A DNA stretch of 64,000 bases from Paraphysomonas bandaiensis. Taxonomy: Eukaryota > Protista > Chrysophyceae. Of the stretch, positions 811 to 43,479 are shown in pieces (the first letter of the stretch is position 1; every line of letters begins with the position of its first letter). The position numbers and the translations under genes were made by a program. The DNA lies in NCBI GenBank assembly GCA_965644295.1, contig CBFFRP010000433.1:124001-188000 (forward strand), in the 5' to 3' direction. Under the pieces are notes generated by a model. The model saw only the letters and a list, made by a program, of their open reading frames with translations. It was not told the DNA's origin and searched no databases.

Positions 811-948
811 CGTATCGGCAGTCAGCATCTTATTTTTTCGGTAATAAAATGAAGCAAATATACTCTATATAACTGCAGTATATATATGGCTGTAATACAC
901 ATAATTGTTATCTCAATATTAGAGGCATCTTTGAAGGATGCCGATACG
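811..948 (+). mobile_element. MITE-like promoter repeat, copy 1 of 5
   Basis: Perfect 10-bp TIR cgtatcggca...tgccgatacg; core gtcagcatcttatt...ataattgtt.tctcaatattagaggcatc shared with copies at 16735, 26139, 32453 and 43333. Confidence 0.8.
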
Positions 949-2135
949 ACTGCTGTGCTGATTTGCTGATATATGAGCCAAAAATCTTGGAATTTTGACC
1001 AATTCTATAGGAATTGGGATTTTGAGTGTATTTATCTAAATTTACATCCGGCAACGTACTGGAATTTGGACATTTTTTTCGGGGTTTTGGCATTGATAAA
1101 TAGCCTATTTTTATGTGATTTCAAAAGTTGTCAGTACAAGGTGTTGATCTTAACACTCTGCCAATGGATGCACGTAGATATCAACCGTCTGGAATATGTA
1201 AATGTATAAATTGGAATGCGAGCTATGTTGTAACGAGATCATTTCACGTGAATTGTTCGTTGTTCGATATTGGATGTTTACACATGGGTACACTCTGGTT
1301 TTGGAATGTGATACTACTACAGACGATACGGAGCTTTGACCTGAACACAATAGCCTGCTCTCTACACTTTCTAATCAACTTTTCCTGCTGAAATTTGGAA
1401 TGACGTTTTAGAAATGAAGTGCTGCTGTGACATACTCGAGCTCTTCTGTGCAACACAGAGTAAATATCGGATGACCGCAGATAATGGAGCACGGGACTCT
1501 CCCAACAGTCGTAAGGATTGTAACACAAGTAATTAAGCATTTTGAATAGTTTATTTGTAGTGATAGGAAGTTCCGGAGTGGAGCTGGCTTGCACTCTTGC
1601 TTTTTTACTATTTTATTTAAGATCATCGCAACATATTGCGTGAAGTTTATAACGTTGTTACTTCGTAATATTATATTGTATCTTAATCTTACAGTAGTTA
1701 CAGTCTTAAAAAGGGATAGAGTTTAGTATTTAATTAGAAGAGACCCTTAGATGTACGATGTAGTATATCATTATCATTGTTACTTCGGTGGGAAACTAAA
1801 TTTCAGTGTGCACAAGAAATCTTATCCCACTCACTCAGGAGAGAAAGGCGTTGAATCGATTGGTGTCGTAGAAGTTACACATCTATTAAGTGTAATTTAT
1901 TATTTCTCTCCTGTTAAGCTGGCGGTGATTGGATTGTGTTATCGCTCGAAACTGGCGAGAGATACAGTAATGATGACGAAAGTAATCTATTTAAAAATAA
2001 AACATTGCACTTTAAAATAATTAATATTACTTCCTAATATAATTTAATGAATATGAAAGTACTTCATAAATAAAGCTAATGTCATGGTCATAGATATAAT
2101 ACAGAATACAGACAAGCACTACATACTATGGGTCA

Positions 2136-2870
2136 CTACGATTCCAAAACAAAACTCTTTATCTCATCTAACTGAGGTTTCGAAATCGAATTGTTTTTCT
2201 CGAGTTTTGTCAGTATGGCTTTGCACTGTTTCTCTTTTCCTTGCTGGGACAATTTGAGAGCTTTCTTAAGGTCTTGGTGCAACTCGGTTGGAACATTAGA
2301 CAACGCATCCTGAAAAGTAATCTTCGCGGATGATTTCTTTTCACTACGCACACTCGCTATCTGAATACTACAACTTTCGGTTTCACTTAAGTCTGATTTA
2401 CATTGAGTTTCCACATCATCAGTAGCGCTGGGCCCTTCATGTAAGTTATTTCTCCGATTTGATTTGGCGCTTTCGTACATGATGGAGCAATTCAGACTAC
2501 ATGCATCAACTGTGTATTTTAACAATTCACGCGGCAACGGAGTTTTCATTCTAACATTTACGGTGTTTGGAGGGTTCCTGTTTTCCAGAATCCCCATCTC
2601 CCGAAGTCTTTTGAAGGTATACAATCGCCTATTATTTAGCGAGAACAAGTGACCATCAGCTCCAGTCAGTATCGTAATTTTGGGGAGCTGTTCGATAGTC
2701 GTTCGACCTTCTGCAATATCACGTATGGTATCCTCAATTCGACGACCGCATCCACTAAAACATGGTCTATACACAATGGTTCAGGTGAATCTAGGGGCAT
2801 ATGGCTAACATTACCTTATTTTAGAGTGTGTGAAACGCACTGTGATGGGGTCAATGTCTACAAAGCTCAT
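2136..2870 (-). CDS. Conserved hypothetical protein with FTHSKIRP / SLNNRRL motifs (ParB/Sulfiredoxin-like N-terminal domain)
   Basis: Exon 1 at 2870-2815 (MSFVDIDPITVRFTHSKI), GT-AG intron ~2814-2768, joined to the 212-aa ORF (RPCFSGCGRRIEDT...LFSLNNRRLYTFK). Confidence 0.75.
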
Positions 2871-3392
2871 TTTATACTACCTAAACGTTGTGCTTAATCT
2901 TTGGATGTTATTCTCAATTCTTGTGATACCGTTTGCTATGTACCACTGATTGTCAACCAATTTATTAGAGGGATTACATGGTTGCATCTGCCTGTCCAGT
3001 AAAGCAACTGACGGACCGTGTATGGCCAAAGGATATACTATATCGATTTGTGATTGGTTGAGTAGTTTTCTGGAGGACAGAGAGAGTACTGTAGCGCAGT
3101 TCTAGCTACAGACATGGTAATTTGCCGGATATTTTCATACATTATCAAGAAATACCAACTCTTCATATCAAAAAATCTACAATATCTATTTTTCAGGCCT
3201 CAAAAATAAAGAAAATCCGTAACATCTGGTACGAATCGTAGTATGGAACGGGACTTTTTCATATGTGTGGAATATCTTACATATGGGACCATATCAGATC
3301 AAATGGTTAAAGAAACCATTAGAATAACACTCATATTAAGATTAGTTTCTTTGTAGTTTTCATTTCTTTTGTATCAGATAGAGAGTAAAGAG

Positions 3393-4629
3393 ATGAATGA
3401 TTCAATTGACTCAACACCGAGAATGAATCCTTTACAAAGAGGTATCGACATGGAAAAAATTAAACACACTGCAGAGATGTCAACAAGAAAATTAAAAGAG
3501 AATGCAGAAATGTCGAAAAAGAAATTAAAAGAGAATGCAGAAATGTCGAAAAAGAAATTAAAAGAGCTCAGAGACGTCCAAAAGATGAGTATGTATCTCA
3601 GAGCTCCTCCAGTCCCGAAGAATCAACCTGCACTGAGTGAGCGTAAGCAATCAGAATTCATTGCAATTATAGTCGGAGGAACTTTATTGACTATAAATGC
3701 GGGGTTTATTAATGCGGTCACTCTGCTCTACTCGGGTTTAACTACTTCACATGTGACGGGCACATTCACTAAGACTGCTGTATTTGCCGAAACGGGCCAG
3801 ACAAAGATGTTTTTCGAGTTTTTCTTTGTGATACCTTTTTTTATGTTTGGGAGCTTTCTAACATCTCTACTCGTTTCTTATCAAACATTTTACATGGGTA
3901 GAGCATACAATAAAGTGTTTCTTTTGGGTACGTTTTTCTTATTGATATCGTGTCTTTTTGGAATGTACCTACCAGAGCATCAAATTTATACATACTTTGT
4001 TGCAATTGCATGCGGAATGCAGGTGAACTATCATACTTTAGTATTCACTTATGTTAACCGTTGTATATTTATAGAATGCTATGACAACCAACTACAGTGG
4101 TAGTGTCTTACGTACGACTCACATGACTGGAATGGCAACGGATGTGGGAATCGTACTCGGAAAAGTTGCTAAGGGGCAGTACAAAGATGCCTGGAAGTTG
4201 AAGCTTTTTATACCAATGATGATAGGATTTTTTTGTGGTGGTCTGCTTGGAGCAAAGGCGGTTCGTGACCATGGCCCATCGGCATTACTCTTGAATGTGG
4301 CAATATTCGGTGGTACCGGACTGCTATATGCTCTTTATGTGTCGACGTACCATAGAATATCTTTTATGCAAGCTCTGCTGTCATCACAAGATTTGAAACC
4401 TGCTACGGAGCCTACTGCTGTTCCAACTGGAAGTGTGGCATTACCGCAACAGGATATCGAGGCTGGGTTTGACCACGACGACGAGCTTGACGAGGACGAT
4501 GCTGACATAAGTTTGCATGATGATCTCAATCATTATATTGAAAGTGATCATGGTAGTGAAGGTGATGAAGAGCTCAAGATTGAGCATGGAGATAATCAGT
4601 TATTAATTACAGGAATTCAGAGTTTGTAG
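3393..4629 (+). CDS. DUF1275/YoaK family membrane protein
   Basis: Motifs NAGFINAV...TSHVTG and GMQNA...RTTHMTGMATDVG across an intron at ~4023-4074; ~6 hydrophobic helices; acidic C-tail; N-terminal 33-bp repeat (ENAEMSKKKLK). Confidence 0.85.
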
Positions 4630-5581
4630 ATCACAGTAAGAAATATACCAAGTAGCTCTATTGTTGCTCTAATTCCGATGGAAAGGGCACTGTTACACAG
4701 AATTGTTTTTTGATTTCATATTTAAAGTATTATGTAGTATGTGCAATAGATTTATTTGTTAATATTGACATACTAATCAATTTGTAGTTTACTTAAGTGT
4801 CTGTCATTAGCTTATTTCGCATGGTACTATAGAGAGGAATTTCAATGACGACTTACTGTACATACTACAGCATTGACAAAGTATCAAGTGTAATACTATA
4901 TTTGCTTTTAGATATATTTAGTTTTAATTATAATTTTATATTTCTAATTCAACGATAGAAATGTCGAATAAACAACCCCTAAACCTCAAGATGTAAACCT
5001 GCTTAAAACTGAAAAAAGGAATATGCCACTGGTTCTGCATCATTGTAGTCTCTCCAATACATGCACAATGCACACCATCGTTACCAGAGATAAGCGTATC
5101 GCTAAATGTTGCGTCGATTCTTGTGATGCGGCACTTTGTGAATCAGGGCACTGAATTGATTGATTCAACAATAGAGGTTAGAATTCTAGCCTAAATATCG
5201 AAGTTATTCTACATGTTTCAGTTGATTGAGGGAGTGATCAGAATCTATTTGTAACTACCTACAGATCCGCAATATTAGTCGCCAATACTAGTTGAGCACA
5301 CAAACAACAATTGCAACAGAAATAGCAATAGGGATGTCAGCAGTACGAGCTGTATTTACATTTTACTGAAATGAGAAAAGTCTCTGAATGATATAGTAAA
5401 AACTGCAAGCATATGAAAATAACCTACAGCAGCATACCAGTGCAGTAAAATATACATAACGTAATATCCAAAATGTTATCAACTCTTTAATAAATAATGA
5501 AAAATATGTGCAAATGAGAATAACAACTGCGGTTTTCTCTTAAAGTAGTAAGAAAAAGCTACGACACAATACAGCTATCCA

Positions 5582-10373: not shown

Positions 10374-11401
10374 TATTAGTTTACTTAAATATTATAAATC
10401 TGTTGGTTGATTATATATGAAACTTATGCATATATTGTAATGGTATAGAATTGATATTGATATTGAAGTATGTATAGAAGTCAAAGAAGCCTTCTGCAAC
10501 CTCATTTTCTTTATATATGATGTGGTCGGAATTAGAAAAAGGATTCTAGAAGCATGACCGAAAAAGTGTTGCTGTGTAGGTTGGGAATTCCAACGCACAG
10601 TTAGTTGTGCAGCAGTACATACAATATGATGATGATAAAAATCTGCTATTTTCAACAAATGTCTCCATACACAAAAGTCACCCAAAATAGGGGCTTTTTA
10701 TTAAAAACTGAAAGTTTATATAATCGGGGGTTTTGGCTTAAAATCCCCGTACAAAGCCTATTTCCTACTTTCATTTCCCATAACGGACATTTTTACCATA
10801 CCTCATTGACGATATTTCCTTATTTTATATAAAAAAACAGTAATTTATTAAATCGTCTGGTCTGTCCCATTTATCCAGTGCGTTGTCCACAGTGGGACAC
10901 ACCTTAAAGAGATAGCTATCTATGATACGTTGCTTCAAATCAATCTCTATGTGAAAGCACTCATCGAAACTATTGCTGAAATATTTTATGTGTCACATCG
11001 TAATCCTCCAATGATTTTCTCAGTGCTGTAGATATGGTTGCAGGTAGTGTTCCCTCTAAAAGTAATACGATATTCTATGATCCAGTAGACGATAGGCTCT
11101 AGCAGCATTCTGCAACTCCTCAGGTTAACTACCGTAATACTACAACATAATAGTTATTCAGCCTCATCGAAATGGCTGAAATGATTTGACATACCACGTC
11201 TAGTACACCTTCTTCCTAAATAGAGTAAACCTATGACGAGGTTGTGAGCATTCACCCAGTTTAATAACAATTAACTCGTACATCTCGCTCATATTCATTT
11301 GTATAAAAGAACATCGTTGATGTATATAATACCTCTAAGTATGTATGAACAGGATAAAGTTGAACTTAATAAACTCGAAATAAATTAGTAATAGACTACA
11401 A

Positions 11402-12203
11402 CATGGACAGGGAACAATATATTGCAATACTATTGTTAGATAGCGTTCCATCAATAGTATTGATGGATTTTAAAACCGATCCTACAATACAATTACAATA
11501 TATTGCAATATATTAGTATGACTAATCAGTAGGTAAAGACATCCGTAGATTTCATTTTAGTATTAGTCATTAAGATCACATGACAACCAAACCAACTACT
11601 GCTTATAGCTACTAAAAATCCACCTCGTCCTCATCCTCTGAGCCATCATCGGCGAGGTCAACATCACAATATTCATCCACAGAATTAATTGAAATATGCT
11701 AGTATCCGGCCATAACTGTCGAATAGCTTTCAGAAACAACAGCATATTAGTAAGTAGGATGGATACTTTTGTGCAACACTGATATGATATGATATGATAT
11801 GATATGATATAATATGTTTAGCTGTGCTGAACAGACGTTCCCATGTATTGGAAGTACATACCAGGGCCAGGCAACCGTTAATGACTCGTGGATCTCTACG
11901 TTTCTTAATTTTTTGAGCTGGCTGAAGGTTTTTAGTTGCATAGTCAACATCAGCTTCCTTTGTAGCATAGTCCTTTGTAGTGTTGTAATCGATTTCTCTG
12001 TTATTTATATCCATTTTGCACCCTACAGTTGAGAATCCTCTCTGATATGACTATCATAATATTGATTGCAATATATTGTGAGCTCTTTTAACAGAAACAC
12101 AATTGATGGAATATTTTACCAGTTCACCAATCAATATATTTTACAATATATTGCAATATATTGAACAATGTATTGCAATACAATATATTGTTTCCTATCC
12201 CTG
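11402..12203 (-). mobile_element. Non-autonomous hAT DNA transposon, copy A
   Basis: 8-bp TSD gactacaa at 11394-11401 and 12204-12211; degenerate TIR catggacagggaacaatatattg / caatatattgtttcctatccctg; internal hAT dimerisation-domain remnant TSNTWERLFSTAK; contains a (GATAT)6 microsatellite at 11781-11810. Confidence 0.9.
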
Positions 12204-14859: not shown

Positions 14860-16535
14860 CTACAGCTCCCCTTTATTACTGCCACCACTTAACTTTTCCT
14901 GAATGCGTTTCGAAACCCTATCGAACCAATCGACAATATCAGTACTTGCCTTGGAGTATTTATTCATCAGGCCTTCCAGCTGTAAGAGCCTGTTGTCGTC
15001 CGCTTCTTCCCACTGCATATAGGCAACATCAATCCAGTCATCATGCCCAGAGGAATCAGAAGACGGGGTAAGTGTGAGTTCTGCTCTATTTCCTGAGGAG
15101 ATAGATGCCTTGACCTTCTCTGCACACGGAAGGGGGATCATAACAGATGGTATGCCTACATACCCCATTACTGGGTGCAGTCCACCTAGCCTCTGCATTG
15201 CGTTATCATCAGTGTCATAAACTACCATCAGCCGTGCTCCAGTCTCTTGAACAGCCAAGGCCTTCTCATCGAAACGGCATCCTCCCCGTGGAACCAACAA
15301 CGCCCCACCCTTGGCGTTGATACTCGAGAGACCTCCGATACAAGCGTCGCCAGCGGAAGGATCTGCGAGAGATGCAAGGTCTGATACAGGCATAGCAGAA
15401 ATCGGCAGAAGCCCCCCGTAAGTTGACGTGAGGAAATCACATTCCAGGGTGTTCCCCGCAGATAAATCCAAACGAGCTCGACCCCATGTAATCTCCGTCT
15501 GAAAAGCCTTTTCCTCTTCCAACAACGGTAGACATTTACCTCCTTTACCACATTTTAGTGGTACTGCATGCGCGATCAGGGGTCCATTTTCTGCCGAAGT
15601 TAGGAGGGGAGCCAAGGAGGTATTTGCAAGAGTGATTACAGCGAAATCTTGAATCGGTTCAACCATACTGGGCGTAACAGATTCATCGATACCTAAACCT
15701 GACGCAACTGCCTCTACCTTGTCTTCTGTATTTACGATAGCTAGTACAGCTGCCCCATTGGCTTTCGCGATACGAGACTTTTCGAGGAAGGTACATTCGC
15801 CCCTGACAGTGAGCACCATCTTGTTAGTGTATACAGAAGGGTCGGAAGGTGCACTGCATCCATCTAGAGGACTAGCCATGACAAGATCATGAGGACCTTT
15901 TGGGGGTACAACACCAAATGAAGCCGACATATACTGTAATAAACGTTTACGTTTGCTCATGATGCACGCAATACAATTCAGTAGTAATAATATATGAGTC
16001 GTTGAGACCACAACAACATTTACCAGTACATATATTACTTACTTCAAAACTTTGAACGAATCCTGGAAAATAGACCCGCCCGGTTCGGTGTTTAGCTCTC
16101 TCGTCAACCACGTCATCTTTCACGTCATCAGGCACAGTAGCTATGGCCAAGAGCTCCACAGCTCTCGTTTTCAAACGCTCGATTTCCGTTTCCGCCTCAT
16201 CTCCCCATTCAATCAGCTACAAAAATATACAAAATCAATAATATGAATGTGTAAATAGTATATGGCACCATCATCTGATAGTCCATTCGTGTTAATCGAA
16301 GAAGATTACGTGTTTCAGTAATACCCATCTTAATCAAAGAGTCTCTCCTATGCTGAATATTTAGCTCCGCCAATATATCATCGAATGCAGGAACAAGATC
16401 AGTGTTTAGTTTCGGCATAGGTGTCTTATGAGTGTCTTTCTTGACCTTCGGGTATCTTGATTTCTTAGCATTAACAGGAAGTATAAACAGAGTAGCTGCT
16501 AATAACAGTATCCCATACACTCTAATGATTCTCAT
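14860..16535 (-). CDS. ER-luminal protein with two PA (protease-associated) domains
   Basis: Signal peptide MRIIRVYGILLLAATLFILPVNA; exons 16535-16269, 16216-16043, 15933-14860; PA signatures RGECTFLEKSRIAKANGA and RGGCRFDEKALAVQETGA; ends KGEL. Confidence 0.85.
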
Positions 16536-16734
16536 TTTAATAGTTATATAATTAGAATATATATGCCTTTATTTGTTCATGAAGTTGTGTAGTGTATAGT
16601 TGCATGCAAGTCTACTGGCACTTTAAGTATGATATTGTGAGAAAGGACTCTGTGTATGTGTACTGCTGTAGACTGCTATGGAACCGTTTTTGATAGATTC
16701 CATATGTAAAATACTACAAAGATAATACAGTGTA

Positions 16735-16885
16735 TACTTTGGCAGTCAGCATCTTATTTTTCGGAAATATATTGAAGCAAATATTTTCTATATTACTGAT
16801 ATACAACTACGGCTGGAATACAGATAATTGTTGTCTCAATATTAGAGGCATCTCTGAACAAAAATATACAAAGGATGCTGATACG
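16735..16885 (+). mobile_element. MITE-like promoter repeat, copy 2
   Basis: ggcagtcagcatcttatttttcggaaat...ctcaatattagaggcatc...ggatgctgatacg; lies between the divergent starts at 16535 and 17040. Confidence 0.85.
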
Positions 16886-17039: not shown

Positions 17040-17557
17040 ATGGCTGTCATTGTTCCCAGAAATTTTAAGCTCCTCGAAGAGGTTTTTTCTAATAATTCAT
17101 TGTGTATATAGAACTAACATATACATCTATAGCTGGAGGCTAGTGAGAAAGGGACGGGTGATATGAGCATTAGCATGGGGCTCGTAGATCCTGATGACAT
17201 TTTACTTACAGAGTGGAATGCATCGATTCTAGGACCGGCGATGGTAAGATCTGTATTGTTGTGACCTGTATTATGATTCTAATGCTGTACCAGACTCCTT
17301 TCGATGGCCAGCTTTACGAATTGAGAGTTACCTGTGGACCTAACTATCCTAATCAACCCCCTGTAGTTCGTTTTGTTACTCGTATTAATCTGAGTTGTGT
17401 AGACCAGAGAACTGGCATGGTGACCTCCGATTTACCAGCCATTTCCAACTGGCATAGAAACATGACCATTGAGGACGTGCTTCTTGGAATTAAGAGCACA
17501 ATGACTTCGCCTCAGAATCGCCGACTTCCACAACCTGCTGAAGGCACTATGTTTTAG
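17040..17557 (+). CDS. MMS2: Ubiquitin-conjugating enzyme E2 variant (UEV1/MMS2)
   Basis: [31 protein letters not shown]...WNASILGP...[16 protein letters not shown]...[11 protein letters not shown] across two introns. Confidence 0.95.
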
Positions 17558-22691: not shown

Positions 22692-24193
22692 CAGGGCTAG
22701 GAAACAATTATTGCAATACTATTGTTAGAGACCGTTCCAACAATAGTATTGATGGAGATTTTAAACAGGCCCAACAATACAATTACAATATATTGCAATA
22801 TATTGTACAATGTATTGCAATATATTAGTATGACTAATCGATAAGTAAACACATCGGTAGATTCCATTTTTAGTGTTAGTCCTCATTAAGATCACATGAC
22901 AACCAAACCAACTACTGCTTATAGCTAATAAAAATCCACCTCGTCCTCATCCTCTGAGCCAGGGCTAGGAAACAATATATTGAATTGCAATACATTGTAC
23001 AATATATTGCAATATATTGTAAAATATATTGATTGGTCGACCGGCCAAAAATCCCATAAATACATAAATACTGTTTCTTTTAAAGTAGCTCACAATATAT
23101 TGCGATCAATATTATGATAGTCATATCAGAGAAGATTCTCAACTGAAGGGTGCAAAATGGATATAAATAACCGAGAAATTGATTACAACATTACAGAGGA
23201 TGATGAAGCTGATGCTGACTATGCGACTAAAAATCTTCAGTCAAAAAATTAAGAAACTTACAGGTCCACGAGTCATTAACGGTTACCAGGCCCTGGTATG
23301 TACTTCCAATACATGGGAACGTCTGTTCAGCGCAGCTAAACCTATTATATCAGTGTTGCGCAAATGTATCCATCCTACTTAATATGCTGTTGTTTCTGAA
23401 AGCTATTCGATGATAGCATATTTCGATAAATACTGTGGATGAATATGGTGATGTTGACTTCACCAATGATGGCTCAGAGGATGAGGACAAGGTGGATTTT
23501 TATTAGCTATAAGCAGTAGTTGGTTTGGTTGTCATGTGATCTTAATGAGGACTAACACTAAAAATGGAATCTACCGATGTGTTTACTTACCGATTAGTCA
23601 TACTAATATATTGCAATACATTATACAATATATTGCAGTATATTGTAATTGTATTGTTGGGCCTGTTTAAAATCTCCATCAATACTATTGTTGGAACGCT
23701 CTCTAACAATAGTATTGCAATATATTGTTTCCTAGCCCTGCTCTGAGCCATCATCGGTGACGTCAACATCACCATATTCATTAACAGAATTAATTGAAGT
23801 ATGCTAGTATCCGGCCATAACTGTCGAATAGCTTTCAGAAACAACAGCATATTAACTAGGATAGATACCTTTGCGGAACACTGATATAATAGGTTTAGCT
23901 GTGCTGAACAGACGTTCCCATGTATTGGAAGTACATACCAGGGCCTGGTAACCATCTTAATTTTTTGAGCTGACTGAAGATTTTTAGTCGCATAGTCAGC
24001 ATCAGCTTCATCATCCTCTGTAATGTTGTAATCAATTTCTCGGTTATTTATATCCATTTTGCACCCTTCAGTTGAGAATCTTCTCTGATATGACTATCAT
24101 AATATTGATCGCAATATATTGTGAGCTACTTTAACAGAAACAGTATATATAGGATTTTTGTCCGGTCGACCAATATATTGCTTCCTAGCCCTG
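22692..24193 (-). mobile_element. Non-autonomous hAT element, copy B (interrupted by copy C)
   Basis: TIR cagggctaggaaacaat / attgcttcctagccctg; 8-bp TSD tcgtatac at 22684-22691 and 24194-24201; colinear with copy A. Confidence 0.92.
22960..23740 (+). mobile_element. Non-autonomous hAT element, copy C, nested in opposite orientation inside copy B
   Basis: TIR cagggctaggaaacaatatattg / caatatattgtttcctagccctg; 8-bp TSD ctctgagc at 22952-22959 and 23741-23748; remnant ALVCTSNTWERLFSAAK. Confidence 0.92.
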
Positions 24194-24415: not shown

Positions 24416-25759
24416 CTACGCTGCATCTTCTCCCAAGTTTGATCCTGGTGAATCGGGGCTGTTCGGAACCGTATTATAATTCGGCGTGATGGTGATTCGA
24501 TTTAAGCTATCGCGTTTACGTGCTGGTGAAAACATCGGCGTGTAGGTTTTGCTTGCCCCACTAGAGAAATGGAAAGGATCAATATCATCACTAATATCGC
24601 TCACAGTGCTGTTCACAACTGATGTATTTGCATTGGGATTCGGCGTCTGTGTTAATGAAAAGAAATCTAATGTGTCAGAATCAAACGGAAGTACAGGGGT
24701 CTCCAAAATAAATGAGTCAACGTCATCCATCGCCTCGTACTTCTCACCAAACCCCATAGATTTCTTTTTCAGGTCACCCTTTGTAGGTTTGGGACTTTTA
24801 ACCTGCTTGCAAGTGTAAAACAGCAGGATACACAACACAACCAGAGATGCCAAGATTAGAGGCACTATTACTAATATACTATCCATACTACGCCGATCGC
24901 CACATCCAACACAGTTAAATGCAGAGTCAACTTCTAACGACGGCACCGTAGTGGGAGGCTGTGTATGTACTCCTCGAAAAGTTGGAGCAGAGCTTACAAG
25001 AGTGGGAATATCAGTCGGGATAACTGAAGGAATAACGGAGGGCCTACCACTAGGAGAGTATGTAGGAAGACCAGATGGAGATGCAAAGGTTGGAAACAAT
25101 GATGGCGTAGAAGAAGGAATAACGGAGGGCCTACTACTAGGAGAGTGTGTAGGAAGACCAGATGGAGATGCAAAGGTTGGAAACAATGATGGCGTAGAAG
25201 AAGGAATAACAGAGGGCCTACTACTAGGAGAGTGCGTAGGAAGACCAGATGGAGATGCGAAGGTTGGAAACAATGATGGCGTAGAAGAAGGAATAACAGA
25301 GGGCCTACTACTAGGAAGACCAGATGGAGATGCAAAGGTTGGAAACAATGATGGCGTAGAAGAAGGAATAACAGAGGGCCTACCACTAGGAGTGTGTGTA
25401 GGAAGACCAGATGGAGATGCGAAGGTTGGAAACAATGATGGCGTAGAAGAAGGAATAACGGAGGGCCTACTACTAGAAGAGTGCGTAGGAAGACCAGATG
25501 GAGATGCAAAGGTTGGAAACGAAGTGGGTTTTATACTACTTGGCGATGTCGACGGAGAAAGTGATGTGGTGGTTGTAGATGTCGGGAGATAAGTAGGAGT
25601 TGACGTGGAATATATGACCGATGGAGCAACAGTTGGTTGGGAAGGTATCACAGAAGGTGTGAAAGATGGTGATGAAGCAATATACATACTTGAATCCCCA
25701 TAAAACGATGAATAGCTCTGAGATATTGCACACGTAATCAATATAGTAGCTAATAGCAT
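24416..25759 (-). CDS. Mucin-like S/P/T-rich type I membrane protein
   Basis: 447-aa intronless ORF: signal peptide, 29-aa repeats, single TM (ILVIVPLILASLVVLCILLFY), basic juxtamembrane segment and cytosolic tail. Confidence 0.85.
   Translation of the reverse strand: MLLATILITCAISQSYSSFYGDSSMYIASSPSFTPSVIPSQPTVAPSVIYSTSTPTYLPTSTTTTSLSPSTSPSSIKPTSFPTFASPSGLPTHSSSSRPSVIPSSTPSLFPTFASPSGLPTHTPSGRPSVIPSSTPSLFPTFASPSGLPSSRPSVIPSSTPSLFPTFASPSGLPTHSPSSRPSVIPSSTPSLFPTFASPSGLPTHSPSSRPSVIPSSTPSLFPTFASPSGLPTYSPSGRPSVIPSVIPTDIPTLVSSAPTFRGVHTQPPTTVPSLEVDSAFNCVGCGDRRSMDSILVIVPLILASLVVLCILLFYTCKQVKSPKPTKGDLKKKSMGFGEKYEAMDDVDSFILETPVLPFDSDTLDFFSLTQTPNPNANTSVVNSTVSDISDDIDPFHFSSGASKTYTPMFSPARKRDSLNRITITPNYNTVPNSPDSPGSNLGEDAA
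25020..25520. repeat. 87-bp coding tandem repeat, ~5.7 units (one unit has a 12-bp deletion)
   Basis: Unit TFASPSGLPTHSPSSRPSVIPSSTPSLFP, near-identical at DNA level. Confidence 0.95.
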
Positions 25760-26138
25760 TTACCTATCACAGTAATCACAGTATGCATGCACTGGATAAC
25801 ATGATAATGAAATGATAATTAAATACTATCTATGATAAAGTCGAGAGGAACGACATGTGTCTTGACACCAACACTGCATTGGCAACATCATATATATTAA
25901 CAGTTATTAAACATACACCAGCAGTACACAGTCATATGCGCATATGCGTCTCTCTATGTGTGGTATGTGTACAGTAGTTCCTACTGTGTACTATACACGA
26001 CTAGTGATGACCGTATTTTCTTTTATATACATTGTATACCTTTTTTTGGTAGGAAGAGATACCTGTAGGATACAGAAACTACAATCGTATATATATGTAT
26101 ATATAGCGGCTGGTCATTCAGTGCACACTCTATACAAA

Positions 26139-26243
26139 GGTGCTTCTAATATTGAGACAACAATTATCTGTATTCCAGTCGTAGTTGTGTTACAGTTATA
26201 TTGAGGATTTTCACTTCAATTTATTCCCGAAAAATAAGATGCA
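26139..26243 (-). mobile_element. MITE-like promoter repeat, copy 3 (ends eroded)
   Basis: tctaatattgagacaacaattatctgtattccag...cttcaatttattcccgaaaaataagatgc is the reverse complement of the family core; lies between the divergent starts at 25759 and 26523. Confidence 0.8.
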
Positions 26244-26522
26244 TACGCGATCGTACCTGCTTGTGTATGATATACAGTATACAATCCAATGCACGAGTCG
26301 TATATAGATGTACGTGAGTACTACACTATCATGCTATACAGCAGTATACCTATATACAGTATATCAGGCTCACACTCTGTCTCTACTAGGCTTGCAGCAG
26401 GTCCATCGACCATATATGAATATCCCTCATTCACATCCCTCATATAAATCTACCATATAACTATACAATAATCCATAAACCTCTTCTATATTCAATGAAA
26501 TAATTCATACGGAACTATTACA

Positions 26523-30058: not shown

Positions 30059-32211
30059 CTAACTTCCAGAATCTTTCTTCTCTGACATGCTTAACATATT
30101 CTTCTGTCGTTTGTGCATAGCTGTCACACGCTTTCTGTGTCGTTTTGATTTGATATGCTCTTCATATTGATCGTGTCCCTGAAGGACTCTATTCCCGCAG
30201 ACGTCACACTTAAAATAAGAGCAGTATTATGCAGATGCTAGTATTCAACTACAACTTAAAACCTCAAATATATTTCTTTTACGCCACATTCTTGTACTGT
30301 CACTACAACTCCCTGGGAAGCTTGGCTCCTTATCTACGTGGACAGTGAGGTGCCCGTCGGCTCATATAAATATCATACCTGAATGATATATATTTTGAGT
30401 TTGTGATGGTGGCAGAACATCGCGAGATTCAATTGCTTCGACAAGTGCCTCGATCTGTACAACCACAGTACAACAAACATCAACGCGAACTGAAACTATT
30501 AAACCGAAAAATACACATTGGAAGCTAAAAGAGCACAATGAAGAATAGATGCCTGCGATATATACATTACAAGTTTACCAACCTCAGTGAAGCGCACAAC
30601 ATCACCCTCATCGCTTTCATAAAGATGAGGTAAGGTTGTATCCCCTCTCCATATTCGCAAGACCTGTACCCCACTCCTGATACATTCAAAACCACGCAAA
30701 TAAGAGCTAGATTATATTTACTATTTTACAGTACACTCATATGACTGCCATATATCGCACGCATATTCCAACATTGGCGGATATCCGTACCGTTTACACT
30801 TCGGTATGAGACTGTTTTTAATCCATGTTTGCTGCTTTTTGGCATACTTGATTGTATTACTTTTGATCTGTAATAATTATATATATATTGTCATCAACAA
30901 CGCAAGTATAAGGCAAAATAGAATTCAGAACCTGTTCAATACAATCCGTAAAGATTCGACTTAATTGCTCATCGCTCTCATCTCCAGCAACAGCTTCTAT
31001 ATATGGCAATAACTCCTTGTACCCAATCGCCGCAGATAACCCCATATAATCGTCATTGGCATCCGGCACAGATGAACAAGGCGATAACTTTTGACGGCTT
31101 AATTCAGTATGCATAGCTGTAACTTCTTTAATAAGTCCAGCGGTGACCATTCCATCCACCCTGAAGGTCAAAATATCAATAATAATCAAACTTAATTGGA
31201 TTTCTTCATGAGTCACGATTAAGAACTACTATATTCGAATTAAACATTAGTACCCACCGCCGTCTGAGACGCTCCTTGAGTTCCTCCCAAGGGTAGTCAA
31301 CTATCACAACAACAGCAGGAAATCGGGGGCTTGCTCCCCCTTGAGCTTGCTGATCTCTAAATACTGCACTCAATGGCCCTCCCTTGAATATTCAGTTATC
31401 AACAATTCATTCACCGACTTGTAGTGTAATGAATAACGATTACATTGACTCGTTATCACATGGATACGGCATCACATAAATATGGCATGTATGAAAACTG
31501 CCTGACACACGCTATAACAGTGTCTACGTCAACATCTTTTACCGTTTGTTGTATAATCTCAAGTGCCCTATGTATCCGCCTGGTATCATTTGGGTGAATT
31601 ACAGCAGCTGCCTCAGGATCTACTGATTTGAGAGCCGCATACACATCAGAATACGACTTATCACTGGGCATATCAGGGTCACTATGACCTTCCTTAGTGA
31701 AGGATTCTGATAAGTGATGTTGGTTATATTATGATTTAGGGAAATGTATAAACAGTACCATCGACAAGAGTTTTGGTAAACAACAAAGATTCCACGTAGT
31801 AATGGGTCCCACCAACAACGACAGGAGTTTTACATCGACTAAAAATATCTGATACTATGGGAAGAGCATGTTCTTTGAATTTATGTACATTTAATGTCTC
31901 TGATGGAGGAAATGATCCTAATAAATGATGAGGGATACCATCCATCTAACATCACTGAGTACATCATCTCACTACATAATATTAATATTTACCTCTGATT
32001 CAGATACTTTAGCAGTTGCAATATCAAGACCTAATTATTTAATAATGATTACTGTATATATACATCTATATATAGATATACCTGAATATAACTGAAATGC
32101 ATCCGCATTAATTATTTCTCCTTGTAAACGACTAGCAAGATGTATAGATATTTCAGATTTTCCAACCCCTGTACTACCACATACAAATATACATGTAGGA
32201 TGTTTCATCAT
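30059..32211 (-). CDS. TRIT1: tRNA dimethylallyltransferase (MiaA/Mod5/TRIT1)
   Basis: P-loop GSTGVGKS, EIINADAFQLY, GIPHHL, VVGGTHYY, IHPNDTRRIHRALE, AIGYKE, YAKKQQTW, C-terminal zinc finger CDVC...HIKSKRH; many short introns. Confidence 0.95.
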
Positions 32212-32452: not shown

Positions 32453-32607
32453 ATCGTATGGGCATCCTTTGTGTATTTTTGTTCCAAGATGCCTCTAATA
32501 TTGAGACAACAATTATCTGTATTCCAGATGCACTTGTACAGCAGTAATATATACTATTATTGCTTCAATTTATTTCCGAAAATTAAGATGCTGACTGCCC
32601 GTACGAT
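32453..32607 (-). mobile_element. MITE-like promoter repeat, copy 4
   Basis: TIR atcgtatgggca...tgcccgtacgat (11/12 match) around the reverse-complement core; between the divergent starts at 32211 and 32682. Confidence 0.85.
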
Positions 32608-32681: not shown

Positions 32682-35600
32682 ATGAACCCACCAAAAATCT
32701 TACTCGAACGTATAGAAAAATGGTTATCTCCCATCTACTGGACAGACACCAATATCCACAGCTCTCTCTATCCCCTCCATATCCCAGTCACTTCCCTTAC
32801 CGTCCACGAGCCTCCCAACACTCAGCGTCCTTCATTTCAAAATATAATCTCCCATCATTTTAGAGATACACATATTGGAGAATCATTTGGTCCTAGTTGG
32901 TCTACTAAATGGTTTAGGTTTCAAGTTCATGTCCCTATGAACCTACAGGGAGAATGCATTGCCCTCAAATGGGATAGTAATTCTGAAGCGATGCTATATA
33001 ATGCTAATGGGGAACCTATACAGGCGTTTACTGGAGGTGGAGGAAGTGATAGAAGAGACCTTTGTATACTTGAGTATTCAGCTACAGCCGGTGACTCAAA
33101 AACATATTTTGTTGAAATGGCTTGTAATGAAATGTTCGGTAATGGACAAAATGGAATGATCATGCCTCCTGGAGAAAACAAACGGTTTACTTTAAGTACT
33201 GTTGAAGTTGTCGTTGTGAATCAACCTGCAATGCAGTTATATTGGGATATGACTTTTCTGTACGATCTTGTGAAATCTCTTCCAAGCGACTCTGCGACAG
33301 GCGCCCATGCGACGTCTGTAATGACTGAAGTGCTCAACAGTATTGACCTGTCGTGTACTGAGTCAATATCATCCGCTCATAAGCGACTACAGGGTATTTT
33401 AGCTGACTCTTCGTCATGTAAGATTGATCACGATGTGTATGCTTTTGGTCATTGTCATATTGACACCGCGTGGCTTTGGCCCTACGAGGAGACACGTCGC
33501 AAGGTGGCTCGTTCCTGGGTCACACAGTTGAAGTTAATGGAGCGGTATCCTGACCACCGATTTGTAGCCTCTCAAACCGTTCAATATGAGTGGCTTGCTG
33601 AGGATCAACCCGATATTTTTCAACGGATACGGAATGCAGTTGTCGAAGGACGTTTTGTTCCGATAGGTGGGACATACGTAGAATTTGATGCCAATATTCC
33701 ATCTGGAGAATCTATGATTCGGCAATTTCTTTATGGCATGCGGTACCTAGATGCACAATTTGGAGTCAGACCGGAAGTGTTCTGGTTACCGGATACGTTT
33801 GGATACTCCTCACAGCTGCCGCAGATAATGAAAGGATTTGGCATAAAGTACTTTCTCAGTCAAAAACTGAGTTGGAATCTTATAAACACGTAAAGATTTA
33901 CCACGCACATAGTTTTGTTACTTATTGTGTTGTAGGTTTCCACACAATACTTTTGAGTGGGAAGGGATCGATGGGTCATCAGTTCTAGCTCACTTCCCTC
34001 CGGCAGACAATTATAACTCTGAAGCCAACCCATCAGATATAGTAAAAACTGTCTCTAACAACAAGTCCAAGTATGTCTCATACTTTTCGCATATATACCC
34101 GCTCATTTACATTGATAAAACAGTTTTTTATTAATTTGTATGATATATGACTTACGCGTTGTTTCGTTTCCAGGATGACGTCTAACCGATCGATGTTATT
34201 ATTTGGACACGGAGATGGAGGAGGTGGCCCAGCGGTATCCCACTTAGAGAAGCTGAATCGGTGTGTGAATTGTCCTGCACTGCCACGACTACACCTTAGT
34301 TCTACCCCTGATGACTTCTTTCACAAGGTTTGCACTCATTTTGTTTGTTGATGTGCTCAAATTTTAGCATTAGATTGAAGAGGATTTAAATCTTGGAGAA
34401 CAGTGCTTTACGACCAGTCGCAGGCCAGTGCCTCATTCGAAATGGATAGGCGAGCTGTATCTGGAACTCCACCAGGGTACACTTACCACGAATGCTAACA
34501 TAAAGGCACGAAACAGGTTATGTGAATATAGATTAAGGGCAGTGGAGGCTATACATTCGCTGTGTACAATATGTGCACAACTAGGCATGTTCTCCAATGG
34601 AGAGGTTGATTTCCTCCAAGTCACGAGGGACGAACTGACGGCTCGGTGGAAGGATACTCTCCTGAACCAGTTCCATGATGTGTTGCGTAAGTGTTACCGA
34701 AAATATCGCTTATTTCGTAACTGTATGTGCAGCGGGAACCAGTATTGCCAAAGTTTATGAAGACTCTGATAATATTCATGTGCGGGTTTTAGCTACTTGT
34801 GATGATCTCTTGCAAAAAATGTCCCGCATGCTGCTTCGATTTCTTGTAGACGATAATAGTGGAGATGCGGTACCGTCCAAGAAGAGGTCACACTCCCAGA
34901 CTCAGTATGAGGAGAAAGGTGAGGCTTGGGTCTTCAATCCATGTGCTGTTGGAAGACAAATGTATGGGCTGAATCGCACTGGCTCCTGTGGAATGACTAA
35001 CATTCCCGGATTTTCGTACAGTAAATTGGTCTCTTTTACTCCCGGGTACCTGAATATTCAGAACAATCAAACAGATGCTCTTGAATGTACATATGCAGAG
35101 AAGAGACCTGATGGGTTGTTCATGCTTAGAAACGAATTGGTGGAGGCCATTGTATCAGAACATGGGCAAATTCTATCATTTGTTGACAAACGATGCCATC
35201 CTCCTCGTGAAGTGATACAACAACATGGAAAACCCAAGAGTGGTTTGGCTAATAATTTTGTTTTATACGATGACATACCTTTCTTTTGGGATGCATGGGA
35301 TGTGATGCCTTATCACCTCATGACAGGTAAAAGTATTAATGGAATCGACTGTGGAGGAAAACACAAAGTCGCAGTTGTGTCGGAGGATTGTGTTGCTTCA
35401 TTGCGCTTTCAACTGACTGGATGGGGTGAAAATTCTCAGACAGACATAGAGTTCACCATGACGTTAAGTGCGAACAGTCCAATGATTGTTTTCGATGTCA
35501 ATGTGAACTGGCATGAAAGACATAAGCTGTTGAAGGTAGAGTTTCCTCTGGCAATTCGATCGAGCGTGTTTCGATGTGAAACTCAATTCGGATATACTGA

Positions 35601-36297
35601 GCGCCCAACTCATTCGAATACGTCAACGGATGCAGCAATGTTTGAGGTCTGTGGTCATCGTTTCGCCTCATTATCAGAGAGTGGATATGGCGTTGCCCTA
35701 CTCAACAACAGTAAATATGGTTATAGCTGCAGGGGTTCAACGTTGTGTCTCTCACTTCTACGCTCTCCTAAGTCTCCTGATCCTAACGCTGATATGGGGA
35801 GGCATTCTTTTTCCTATGCATTACTGCCTCATAAGGAATCATTTCTATCAACTTCAAGTGGTTTAGAAGTTCTTCAGTTTGCAACGGCTTTTAACTCGCC
35901 ACCTATTCAAGTCGAAGCTTCCCGAACTAACGACCCGACACCATATGTACCAAGTTGCGTCAAGCGTATGCTGAAAGAAGGGTTATTTTACCTCTCATCG
36001 AGTGGTGATACCTTAGTGTTAGAATCTATGAAAGTGGCTGAAAGAAGAAACGAAACCTTTAGAGAAAATGATGTCGTACTGCGACTGTATGAGGCCATGG
36101 GGTGTCGTGGCGCCGCTCAAGTGTCATGTCGTATTCCGATTGGTCGTGTAGAGATTTGTACTTTAGATGAGGTGCCTATACGTGATATAACAGACAGTAT
36201 GTTAAATCACCTGGATGATGCATCATTTGTAGTAGATTATACTCCTTTTTCTATTGTTACTTTGAGAATATCATTTTCAAAGAAACAGGCGACGTAG
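32682..36297 (+). CDS. MAN2C1: GH38 class 2C alpha-mannosidase (MAN2C1/Ams1)
   Basis: FGPSWST, GHCHIDTAWLWP, SGESMIRQF, nucleophile WLPDTFGY, FGHGDGGGG, WIGELYLELHQGT, NQFHDVLPGT-type motif, LSLLRSPKSPD, VVLRLYE; 4 introns; no signal peptide. Confidence 0.96.
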
Positions 36298-37600: not shown

Positions 37601-37677
37601 TACAATTCATCTTTATTTTAGATGAACACATTTGAACGCATGCTGAAAGTTCTAGAGTAAGTTTGAACATTACTTAC

Positions 37678-37757: not shown

Positions 37758-38000
37758 TACAGGTAGAGGTCTATCTAGCATGACTAGTTTTCATCTAGTG
37801 CAGATTTTTGACGCCTATTGCTAATAATAAGACTTGCATATATATAATATACAATTGTCATTACCACCCAACGCATAGTCCATCGACTGTCTTTTCTATG
37901 TAAATAATGCTAAAATATCACAATCAATTTGTACATTTTTATTGCCTAAGTAATTCGTGATTACTATAGCATATAGCGTTAGTAAATATAGCATTACTAT

Positions 38001-39488: not shown

Positions 39489-40046
39489 TAGATTAGTTGA
39501 ATTGTAAGGGAGGTTATGGAGATATATGGATATGCTACCATGATGATATTATGAGAGAGATGCATGTATGTATGTATGTGTAGATATGCTGGGGCGGTAT
39601 ACTGCTGTATATGATATGGCTGTATAAGACACTGAGATATTGTATAAATAAGAACTATGTATGATATATTATCTAAATACTAGGGTAATAGGACCTCGAA
39701 AACTCATGAAAATTAGGAATATGTATTACAAAACCATAGTTTCTTGAAGCAAAAAAACTACGCATAGAAAAAAATCATCAGGTACAACAGAGAACCATAT
39801 GGTTGAAGATGCAATAGAATACAGTGACATACACTGCAGTATGAGTGTATACACTACTTGCATATGTTATGGTCAGCTCATATGTATTTTCTAGAGCATC
39901 ACTTATGTATGTATAGACACGTACAGAGTACTCTACACTATACATATATGTATGTATAGATGCATTGATTGCATAGTGGCCTCATATCGCATCTATCAGA
40001 TACTGCATCCAACATACACTGAGAAGCAATACAAACATAATCAAAC

Positions 40047-41821
40047 ATGCTTGCACGAAACTTTATGCGTACATCTCTTCGTGGGATAACTCCTTTTCGA
40101 GCCGCATCCACTGAATCATTGAGTTGGGCCAAGACTATGAATGCTCCTCTATCAGAGACCGATCCAGAGCTACACTCTATTATTGAGAGTGAGAAAGGAC
40201 GTCTTCAAGATTGTTTGAATTTAATTGCATCTGAAAACTTAACTTCTAAGTCTGTCTTTGATGCTCTTGGTTCAGTGATGTCGAATAAGTACTCAGAGGG
40301 ATACCCCAAAGCGCGTTATTATGGTGGCAACGAGAATATTGATAAAGCAGAGTTGTTATGTCAGCAGCGTGCTCTAGAGGCATTTAATTTAGACCCTGCT
40401 AAATGGGGTGTAAATGTTCAAACTCTCTCTGGATCTCCTGCAAACTTTCAGGCCTATTCTGCTGTCTTGCAACCTCACGATAGAATTCTTGCCCTGGATC
40501 TTCCCTGCGGAGGTCACCTTAGCCACGGATACCAGACCGACAGCAAGAAAATTTCTGCTGTCTCGGTGTTTTACGAAACAATGGCATACCAGCTAAATGA
40601 GGAAGGAACCATCGATTACGACCAGATCGAAACCAATGCCCGACTCTTCCGTCCGAAGTTGATCGTGGCTGGTGCATCTGCCTACTCAAGATTGATTGAC
40701 TATGAGCGCATACGTCAGGTGTGTGATAGCCACAACGCGTGGATGCTTTCTGATATGGCCCACATTTCCGGTCTTGTTGCCGCTGGAGTTGTTCCTTCAC
40801 CCTTCGACCATTCTGATATTGTCACCACTACCACTCACAAATCTTTACGCGGACCTAGGGGTGCCATGATATTCTACAGAAAGGTGAAATTCCGCCGTAT
40901 TATATTTTCTTACTAACAAATCAATGGCTATGATGGTTTTCCTGTTCATATTAACATTGTTTTCCACAGGGTGTGCGCAAGGTAAACAAGAAGGGCGAGA
41001 ATATCATGTACGACATCGAAGATCGCATTAACTTCTCCGTATTCCCAAGGTAGTCTCCATGTTGATGGATTTCAATCATTGTATCTCTTTTGCTCACATA
41101 TAAGTGCAGATTCCAGGGTGGTCCTCACAACCACACAATCTCTGCCATCGCAACTTGCCTCAAGCAAACCATGACACCCGAATACAAAGCCTACCAGAAG
41201 CAGGTCATGTCAAACTCCGCTACATACGCAAAGGCCCTAGTTGGCCGTGGGTACCATCTGGTCGGAGGTGGTACTGATAATCACCTCGTACTTGTTGATG
41301 TGAAGCGTTCCCGCGGTGTGGATGGTGCACGTGTCGAGAGGGTTCTAGAGCTTGCCAACATATCCGTCAACAAGAACACCGTTCCCGGTGATGTATCTGC
41401 TCTTGTACCAGGCGGTATCCGAATGGGAACTCCAGCCATGACGACTCGGTATTTTTTTCTGTTGTTTTTATTGTTGATAAATGTCTTTTTTGTAGTGGAT
41501 TTACGGATGAGGACTTTGAGCAGGTGGCCGAATTCTTCGACAGAGCTGTCCAGATTGCAGTCGATATCTCGGTACGTTGAGTGTCCATCCATATATTCGT
41601 AAATATAGGCATATACTAGTATACAAGGCACAATACCTGACGTGTGCTATCAAAGTCAGCTTTCCTAATGTTGCCTACTTTATATACAGAAGGAGACGGG
41701 ACCTAAGCTGAAGGACTTCAAGGCGGCATTGGCTGGAGGAGTGGGTAACCACCCACACCTTGCTTCCCTTGCCGACGAAGTCAAAGAATTTTCAAGGAAG
41801 TTCCCTACCATTGGTTATTAA
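40047..41821 (+). CDS. SHMT: Serine hydroxymethyltransferase, mitochondrial-type presequence
   Basis: [31 protein letters not shown] lysine [40 protein letters not shown]; Arg-rich N-terminus. Confidence 0.98.
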
Positions 41822-42415
41822 AATAGAGAATATGCACTCCAGGCTCTAGTTTTTCAGCTACTGTTGTATCATAGTGGCTGTGTTTCACTCAACCGGAATG
41901 ACGTTTCCGCTGTAAGTTAAATACGAAGCATTAGTATTGCTGCAACTTTGCTTGAGTACGTTTTGTGACATTCAACTCGGATGAATGTCAGTTTTGAAAT
42001 AGATATAGAGGCAATGGCTCATGGTACTTAACACTAGATTACGTAGATTTTTTTTTACACTGATAGGAAGCGGTAGGGTAGCTATGTAGGCTTATGTAGC
42101 TACCGATTGCGACGAAGAGACATCACCGATCAGCAGTGGTTCTCTAGTTTTGCGTCAAAATAAAGTGCCGAAAAGTTTATAGTTTATAATATTCTTTTTG
42201 AACATGTCAAGGAACACGCATTAGAGCACTGAGAATTATATTCCGTTGATAATATTCGTCGACTAAATCCGATTCATTCAATCGAACTCTGGAAAGAGAA
42301 ACACAATGATATAACTTAATTATAATATTAAAGAAGGGTGTAGCAGTACTGGATACATATGACATTTACATCTTGATAACAAGCTACTGAGCAAAAACAC
42401 CTTCATCTCTCACTC

Positions 42416-43002
42416 TTACAATGCTCTGTCCATAATTTCCTTTCCGCTGTAAAATACATGTGCAATGTCATCAAAAATAAATTTACGGGTACATACTTAC
42501 AGATGTTTAACAAAAGTTGACTTATCAATTGCATCATCACTCGGTGTGTACTGAGCTGTGGTTGGATCAACACCAACAGCTTCCAAAGCTGACAATACAA
42601 AGGTAAAATCAGCACTTAAGATAGACAGATAGTATTACGCACCTCTCGCATATTGTAACTGGGTCACATAACCTCTACCAGTAATATCAAATATGGAAAA
42701 CATATTGACAAGATCTTGCTCAGCAAAGAGGGTCACCTATCAACAAAATATCAAACAGGACCCCCATCACACTGGCACGTTACCGGCTCATTTTTAGATT
42801 TTTGCTCCTGGATACGTTTCAGTTCTTCCAGCAAAAACTCATTAGGTTGTTCAGGCTTAACAAATGCTAATCTAGCTCCGAGAATCTTTGACTATTCTTT
42901 ATATGTAGTAACAACAAGTATTTGTATACATACCTCAAAGAGCTGGAGAACCTTCTTCTCCTTTAAGTAATTCAATGCATTTTCTCTAGGATCCGATGAC
43001 AT
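42416..43002 (-). CDS. EFCAB10-like EF-hand protein with N-terminal RIIa/Dpy-30-type dimerisation motif (flagellar)
   Basis: Five short exons by eye: MSSDPRENALNYLKEKKVLQLFE / ILGARLAFVKPEQPNEFL / VTLFAEQDLVNMFSIFDITGRGYVT / ALEAVGV / GKEIMDRAL*; not in the ORF track. Confidence 0.8.
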
Positions 43003-43332
43003 AGTTCAACAGAATAACAAAGATATAAAAATTACGAAAGGACAACTATATCGTTTTCCTCTCAGTGTTTCTACTATGTGTCAAGTTGTCTTGTTTAAAT
43101 GCATACTACCTCAATAGCTGTAGAGCCCTCTAGTCTCTAGCTGTTATGTCAAGTAAAAAAAAAGAAACTGAAAACAGAGTAGATGGTACGTATATCTATC
43201 TGCATATACCTATACATGGTATACCGGTATATACACACCATAAGAGTATGCAGATGTCAACATATGCACGGGTTACATAACAAGATATCAATCCGTGACC
43301 GGATCTGTAGTAAGATCCCTCTGGTTGGTGCA

Positions 43333-43479
43333 TATCGGCAATCAGCATCTTATCTTTTCGGAAATATATTGAAGCCAAAAATCTTCTATATTACTGAACT
43401 ACAACTACGGCTGGAATACAGATAATTGTTGCCTCAATATTAGAGGCATCTCTGAACAAAAATATACAAAGATGCCGAT
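43333..43479 (+). mobile_element. MITE-like promoter repeat, copy 5
   Basis: atcggca...tgccgat TIR and a core nearly identical to copy 2; between the divergent starts at 43002 and 43605. Confidence 0.85.

Follow-up and report, generated by a model that had tools for sequence, protein, structure and literature searches.

The DNA analysed here, called the window throughout, is a stretch of 64,000 nucleotides from the chrysophyte Paraphysomonas bandaiensis (contig CBFFRP010000433.1, positions 124,001–188,000) and contains five copies of a short repeat with inverted ends that lie upstream of genes (Table 1). A reading made from the sequence alone had assigned these copies to one family, placed each of them about 75–380 bp from a start codon and described four of the five as lying between head-to-head genes. 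All five were located, align over their full length and share the same terminal inverted repeats (TIRs). The measured distances to start codons are ∼83–376 bp, and copies 2, 3, 4 and 5 lie in head-to-head gaps, with copy 1 in a tandem gap. The element is a miniature inverted-repeat transposable element (MITE), that is, a non-autonomous DNA transposon. The position of its copies in a larger sample of the genome makes insertion targeted to promoters the well supported and likely explanation of this arrangement.

Structure and conservation of the element

An alignment of 38 clean-ended copies, some from the window and the rest from elsewhere in the genome, gives a consensus of 151 bp that begins with CGTATCGGCAG and terminates with TGCCGATACG, creating a terminal inverted repeat of 10–11 bp. 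Most copies are bounded by the TIR sequences CGTATCGGCA(G) and TGCCGATACG. A search of the 62.5-Mb genome with a 30-nucleotide core, allowing up to three mismatches, returned 759 matches (383 forward and 376 reverse), while the reversed control returned none; a BLAST search of the genome gave 873–910 candidate copies. The family comprises roughly 800–900 copies that are dispersed across many contigs and occur on both strands. With five copies in 64 kb, compared with a genome mean of ∼1 per 70–80 kb, the window is dense in this element, which is probably why the family was noticed there.

Identity to the consensus is 89–96% for individual copies (mean 93%), and the copies share 88% identity with one another. 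The divergence of ∼7% from the consensus reflects decay that is evenly spread along the element. The core had been described as better conserved than the TIRs, which is weakly true: variability rises from 0.04–0.06 in the core to 0.094 in the TIRs, with an average of 0.074 for the whole element, but the core has common variants and is matched in conservation by positions 11–30 and 71–80. CpG positions are more variable (0.113) than the remaining positions (0.071), and four of the six CpG dinucleotides are located in the two TIRs. The left end of ∼6 of the 38 copies has a variant TIR in which position 6 is G (CGTATGGGCA). In two copies, window copy 4 and a copy at another locus (L032:4904), this variant is accompanied by the complementary change at the right end; the first reading had noticed that the two ends of copy 4 differ together, and this paired change is real and recurs. 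This variant suggests a subfamily whose master element would have had both ends altered.

No notable open reading frame (ORF) is present in the 151-bp element. No Rfam family reached the gathering threshold anywhere in the window, one copy giving chance-level matches only, and the RNA fold of the element is not better than that of shuffled sequences (z = 0.16). An RNA gene or a short interspersed element (SINE) was rejected because the Rfam and folding tests were both negative. A metagenome search with the 19-nucleotide terminus returned 12 loci. All are chance matches: the DNA there is coding-like and richer in GC, and resembles the element nowhere else.

Target-site duplications and the search for an autonomous partner

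Target-site duplications were counted in 27 copies with near-canonical ends, with the expected numbers derived from mismatched flank pairs. A 2-bp duplication is present in 16 of the 27 copies (2.7 expected) and a 3-bp duplication in four (1.1 expected). The two-base duplications (n = 17) are variable in sequence, with AT found six times, AC, TT and GA twice each, and AG, TG, GT, CT and TA once each. The 3-bp duplications seen are ATG, TCT, TAT, TCA and GTG. It is the TIRs and duplications, together with the lack of a notable ORF, of an Rfam match and of a fold above the level of shuffled sequence, that identify the element as a MITE.

The duplications also bear on the superfamily. The sequence-only reading had envisaged a pogo-like partner with a TA duplication, which the data do not bear out: TA accounts for one of the 17 two-base duplications, and the Tc1/mariner/pogo (Stowaway-like) group was rejected on this ground. 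The PIF/Harbinger (Tourist-like) group was rejected because most duplications are of 2 bp and the 3-bp duplications do not match TWA. ISL2EU was rejected on the sequence of its duplication, since AT makes up only six of the 17 and is not bordered by A and T.

An autonomous partner was sought in the genome with patterns anchored on either end of the element, in which positions were forced to differ from the MITE body. The left-end patterns gave 15 matches, five of which have a non-MITE interior after the shared first nucleotides (Table 1). Two of these five loci resemble MITE copies with an interruption near position 24 and the other three resemble relatives that have diverged or suffered deletions, or the loci may be ends of a larger element. 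The right-end patterns revealed no non-MITE right end in the genome, and no solo ends were found in 354 kb of sampled DNA. Domain matches in the genome number 38 for DDE_Tnp_4, 37 for DDE_3 and one for MULE, with none for the hAT dimerisation domain or YqaJ, and no match to any of these transposase-associated domains lies near the five left-end loci.

Position relative to genes

Gene positions were taken from a coding map of stop-to-stop ORFs, scored with a codon log-likelihood that was trained on ORFs of at least 300 residues from the same DNA; 147 real ORFs pass the threshold used, compared with four in shuffled sequence. The sampled DNA, 354 kb in all, comprises the window, the surroundings of the best BLAST copies (29 loci of ∼3 kb) and those of the first 20 exact-core copies in contig order (20 loci of 10 kb). 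Removal of duplicates left 55 independent insertion sites with 67 copies. An ORF is said to point away when the element is on its 5′ side, and promoter denotes the region preceding the first ORF recognisable as coding.

ORFs within 500 bp of the 55 sites point away from the element in 48 cases and toward it in two (binomial p = 2e-12), and within 1 kb the numbers are 59 and six. Where both neighbours are known within 1.5 kb, 18 sites are divergent, six tandem and one convergent, compared with 18% divergent, 49% tandem or intron and 33% convergent for random non-coding positions in the same DNA. In this sample, an even spread over the intergenic classes, which the sequence-only reading had named as refuting if seen genome-wide, was not found. 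Plain ORFs called without the codon model gave 40 away and one toward at a minimum length of 150 residues, and 35 away and none toward at 200 residues. In tandem gaps, the copy is nearer to the 5′ end of the downstream gene in eight of ten cases. The crude map labelled window copies 1 and 5 as convergent. By eye, both are upstream of small or weakly scoring genes, so that the true 5′ bias is, if anything, stronger.

Other interspersed repeats served as a control (72 sites, from an all-against-all BLAST of the same 354 kb with the MITE family and coding DNA excluded) and show the opposite bias, with five ORFs within 500 bp pointing away and 21 toward. By gap class, 22 of their sites are convergent, 15 tandem and one divergent (Fisher p = 5e-12 against the MITE). 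The first reading is upheld in its statement that convergent spacers host the other repeat families: 22 of 38 other-repeat sites are convergent, compared with one of 25 for the MITE. By the ORF-start proxy, the element thus shows enrichment at gene 5′ ends together with depletion at 3′ ends, the behaviour of elements of the Mu and P type. Head-to-head gaps account for about two thirds of the sites. This excess is close to what promoter targeting predicts, since each such gap contains two promoters, and no preference for head-to-head gaps beyond their two promoters is demonstrable. The window was said to have four of its seven divergent gene pairs occupied; the four occupied pairs stand, but the crude ORF map gives ∼8 divergent gaps.

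Two groups of loci in the sample have features of their own. Locus L026:1–1650 (C430:241294–242940) contains the tail of a Harbinger-like transposase, with a DDE_Tnp_4 match that ends just before the locus, and a convergent small ORF from 1058 that is Myb/SANT-like by eye and has two MITE copies ∼90 and ∼450 bp upstream. The copy nearer to the ORF was rejected as an end of the Harbinger-like element because it is complete and has its own TA duplication. From this arrangement, the MITE seems to insert into promoters of transposon genes too. At L023–L025 (C598:542, 5162 and 9747), three copies spaced 4.6 kb apart agree in their flanks and in their identity to the query; they belong to a tandem unit with a RING/zinc-ribbon ORF that was duplicated after the MITE insertion.

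Composition of the target

Sequences flanking the copies are 2–3-fold enriched in ATAC/GTAT, TGTATA and GTATAC words. The density of GTAT/ATAC/TGTA/TACA words is 0.083 in the first 20 bp from the insertion and falls to the background value of 0.030 by 500–800 bp. Copy-free divergent gaps have a density of 0.047, convergent gaps 0.030 and ORFs 0.025. In divergent gaps these words often form low-complexity TGTATA/ATACAT tracts, as seen in the window, in L031–L050 and in upstream regions generally, and GTAT/TACA richness may be a promoter signature of this organism.

These observations raise the alternative of targeting by sequence only, in which the transposase would prefer GTAT/TACA-rich, bendable AT-rich tracts that are concentrated in promoters, with no involvement of chromatin or transcription. 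The peak of word density within 20–40 bp of the insertion and its decay with distance, the enriched flanks, the higher density of copy-free divergent gaps relative to convergent gaps and the GTAT/ATAC words in the element termini themselves are all in line with it. However, a word density matching that of the median insertion site is reached at 4934 positions in convergent, 7806 in tandem and 4467 in divergent gaps, whereas the insertions are distributed 1, 6 and 18 over the same classes, so that the confinement to promoters is not accounted for by composition alone. Furthermore, a quarter of the insertion sites have two or fewer of these words within 40 bp to each side, and no position-specific target motif was found at the insertion sites. 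We consider this alternative unlikely, although composition may help targeting.

Targeting or domestication

The sequence-only reading offered two options, a promoter-targeting transposon and an exapted element acting as a promoter module, and favoured the latter in describing the family as a candidate domesticated promoter module. If the element were exapted, its copies would be a shared bidirectional promoter, enhancer or nucleosome-excluding cassette, selected at ∼5% of promoters. Their near confinement to regions upstream of genes and the 30-nucleotide core, which at least 100 copies carry without a mismatch and whose variability is a little below the element average, are compatible with such a role, and mPing is an example of a MITE whose cis-elements can change how nearby genes are expressed (PMC4065317).

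The geometry of the insertions argues otherwise. With respect to the nearest downstream gene, 23 copies have the same orientation and 25 the opposite, which is random. The distance from the edge of the element to the first in-frame ATG varies from 79 to 925 bp (median 280 bp), and the relative position within divergent gaps from 0.05 to 1.0 of the gap, with no fixed place. Ten of the 55 sites carry 2–3 copies within 400 bp, and these neighbouring copies are no more alike (similarity 0.76–0.88) than random pairs (0.85 ± 0.04), which identifies them as independent insertions into one promoter. After the length of the copy is deducted, occupied divergent gaps have a median length of 642 bp, compared with 512 bp for copy-free gaps, a difference that is not significant; the occupied gaps are of normal size and not shorter than empty ones, so that the element adds to an ordinary upstream region and replaces nothing. 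About half of the sampled divergent gaps are free of copies and are similar in size and composition. Neither does the core appear to stand apart, given its common variants and the equally conserved positions noted above. Thus, the results do not match a recruited promoter cassette with fixed geometry, and a promoter-preferring transposon fits all of them. We regard exaptation of the family as improbable. As a description of the family, domesticated promoter module finds no support, with random orientation, variable spacing, a core that seems ordinary and normal-sized gaps all pointing the other way, although single copies may have been recruited; the other option, the promoter-targeting transposon, is strongly supported.

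Random insertion, followed by loss through selection, deletion or excision everywhere except upstream regions, is very improbable: the copies are not very young (∼7% from the consensus) and their absence within 79 bp of an ATG suggests some purifying selection, but convergent spacers, which make up 33% of the non-coding space and contain almost no MITE copies, tolerate many other repeats, so that selective loss hardly explains the absence of the MITE there, and promoters usually tolerate insertions less well than 3′ spacers.

We conclude that the element is probably a transposon that targets promoters, as supported by the target-site duplications, the extreme 5′ bias, the opposite bias of other repeats and the repeated independent hits on single promoters. 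Its copies appear to be passengers and not a promoter part recruited by the host. Several points weigh against this conclusion. Gene starts were inferred from ORFs and codon bias, which makes the promoter, as used here, a proxy and not a mapped transcription start. The sample covers 55 of ∼800–900 sites, and since 20 loci were chosen by exact core and 29 by high BLAST score it may favour younger copies. No copy is closer than 79 bp to an ATG, which implies that the pattern also owes something to selection or to a fine-scale rule of target choice, and at ∼7% divergence from the consensus the copies are old enough for some selection to have acted. Neither an empty site nor a presence/absence polymorphism was seen in the single assembly, where a 1.2-kb query for the site of copy 2, the site looked at, found only itself and other MITE copies with no second allele; insertion bias is hence not directly separated from retention. 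Lastly, neither the end-anchored patterns nor the transposase-domain matches revealed an autonomous partner.

Proposed mechanism

A transposase that is encoded elsewhere in the genome, or has now been lost, would bind the 10–11-bp inverted ends of the 151-bp non-coding derivative and move it by a cut-and-paste reaction, with a staggered cut of 2 bp (sometimes 3 bp) at the target. Integration would be biased to regions just upstream of protein-coding genes, and head-to-head pairs, which present two promoters in one short gap, would collect most copies. We infer that the bias arises at insertion, probably through open, nucleosome-poor chromatin or a factor present at active promoters. A preference for GTAT/TACA-rich tracts in promoters may assist integration.

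Comparison with known transposons

Promoter-directed insertion has precedents. Mu and P are regarded as 'precision-targeting' elements at transcription start sites, and insertions of mPing are disproportionately common in the 1 kb upstream of genes (PMC7337890; PMC4065317, respectively). The Tourist-type rice MITEs of the PIF/Harbinger superfamily, of which mPing is an example, resemble the present element in being small and non-coding, with TIRs and hundreds of copies, and in their avoidance of exons and enrichment upstream of genes (PMC4065317). mPing differs in its length of 430 bp (151 bp here) and its 3-bp TAA/TTA duplications, compared with the variable 2-bp (rarely 3-bp) duplications seen here. 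In addition, the 5′ bias of the present element (∼96% of nearby ORFs) is much sharper and its host is a protist.

Mu of maize and P of Drosophila share a strong enrichment at transcription start regions with near absence at gene 3′ ends (PMC7337890). They differ in having other TIRs and longer duplications (9 bp for Mu and 8 bp for P), and their bias was shown with de novo insertions, whereas the present element is known from fixed copies only. For Mu, the genome offers a single MULE-domain match, which is not near any candidate relative.

ISL2EU elements, a group of the PHIS superfamily, have a 2-bp AT duplication and AT-rich targets (PMC4122938; PMC4482050) and duplicate the AT within A/AT/T (PMC4482050). 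The present element is similar in its 2-bp duplications, in the predominance of AT among them and in its AT-rich targets, but AT accounts for only six of 17 duplications, the neighbouring A and T are not seen, and YqaJ, the typical second gene of the group, has no match in the genome. A link to ISL2EU would be a lead only.

Elements of the CMC group (CACTA/Mirage/Chapaev) produce 2–4-bp duplications of variable sequence (PMC4482050). The variable sequence and length of the duplications are a likeness to the present element. The termini of CMC elements begin with CACTA or CCC, and the present element begins with CGTATC.

Our literature search returned no publication about transposons in this organism, nor any about MITEs restricted to promoters in stramenopiles. 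The element represents a new transposon family of a known type and not a new kind of genetic system. A bolder view, which we hold to be doubtful, is that the family is more than a passenger: the 30-nucleotide core at ∼800 promoters (a rough estimate of ∼5% of genes) would wire a common regulatory response or a nucleosome-free architecture, and the transposase would belong to an undescribed lineage that is tethered to the RNA polymerase II initiation machinery and makes variable 2-bp duplications.

With ∼96% of nearby genes on their 5′ side, the copies show one of the sharpest promoter preferences seen among fixed copies, and do so in a heterotrophic protist that has a compact genome and has received little study. 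By marking promoters, the MITE could aid the annotation of gene starts in this genome, and it may be a natural source of promoter variation between strains. Should the transposase be identified, it could reveal how promoters are recognised by a cut-and-paste enzyme in hosts other than plants and animals, and could be of use as a promoter-trap tool.

The five copies and their neighbours

The neighbouring genes in the window were examined exon by exon, with the exons taken singly, by Pfam scans and by eye. Copy 1 has an AC duplication (809–810 and 949–950) and lies in its tandem gap 368 bp upstream of the ATG (∼443) of a minus-strand gene for a secreted repeat protein. No recognisable target-site duplication was found for copy 5. 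The gene pairs proposed in the first reading for copies 2, 4 and 5 stand, namely PA/UEV (UQ_con), TRIT1 (IPPT)/MAN2C1 and EFCAB10/four-transmembrane ORF, with the minus-strand gene named first in each pair. The likely ATG of the EFCAB10-like gene is at 43002 and those of the mannosidase and four-transmembrane ORFs are at 32682 and 43605; the sole exon of the EFCAB10-type gene that matches Pfam spans 42638–42736 (EF_EFCAB10_C, E = 5e-6). The pair proposed for copy 3, mucin/sulfotransferase, stands in part. The mucin side corresponds to a repeat-rich 447-residue ORF on the minus strand (ATG 25759), but on the other side, where ORFs on the plus strand start from 26499, two scanned pieces of the supposed sulfotransferase gave no Pfam match.

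Table 1. Copies of the MITE in the window, neighbouring genes and left-end relatives elsewhere in the genome.
Feature	Position	Strand	Remarks
MITE copy 1	811..948	+	138 bp; 14-bp internal deletion; perfect 10-bp TIRs
MITE copy 2	~16737..16885	+	95% identity to consensus; left terminus decayed
MITE copy 3	~26107..26267 (approximate ends)	-	Both termini decayed; 11-bp insertion near left end; BLAST core 26135-26242
MITE copy 4	32455..32605	-	151 bp; AT duplication; G at position 6 at both ends
MITE copy 5	43333..43484	+	152 bp; 93% identity to consensus; termini partly decayed
PA-domain protein gene	14860..16568	-	ORF pieces 14860-16011 and 16212-16568; left of copy 2
Ubiquitin-conjugating/UEV-type domain exon	17198..17554	+	Right of copy 2; UQ_con E = 6.6e-15
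IPP transferase (TRIT1-like) exons	30860..31945	-	Left of copy 4
GH38 alpha-mannosidase (MAN2C1-like)	32682..36297	+	Right of copy 4
Small EF-hand gene, EFCAB10 type	42500..43002	-	Four short exons, read by eye; left of copy 5
119-residue ORF, apparent four-helix membrane protein	43605..43964	+	By eye; right of copy 5
Locus with non-MITE interior	C263:344427-344563	-	Shared 19-25-nt left end
Locus with non-MITE interior	C295:118857-118993	-	Shared 19-25-nt left end
Locus with non-MITE interior	C363:683648-683784	+	Shared 19-25-nt left end
Locus with non-MITE interior	C373:90279-90415	-	Shared 19-25-nt left end
Locus with non-MITE interior	C430:39307-39443	-	Shared 19-25-nt left end

Other repeats in the window

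The 447-residue ORF to the left of copy 3 contains an 87-bp tandem repeat (24976–25607), in which a 209-nucleotide stretch occurs in seven in-register copies with a spacing of 87 bp (and 75/12 bp). A complex repeat family with long inverted arms and TTGCAATATATTG motifs occupies 11400–12200 and 22700–24150. One pair of its arms, of 253 nucleotides at 22709–22961 and 23470–23722, is 98% complementary, and the family looks like a foldback-type element or nested copies. Finally, direct repeats 4.94 kb apart at 57800–58530 and 62740–63470 are 93–97% identical and extend over plus-strand ORFs; on this evidence, we assign them to a local tandem gene duplication.

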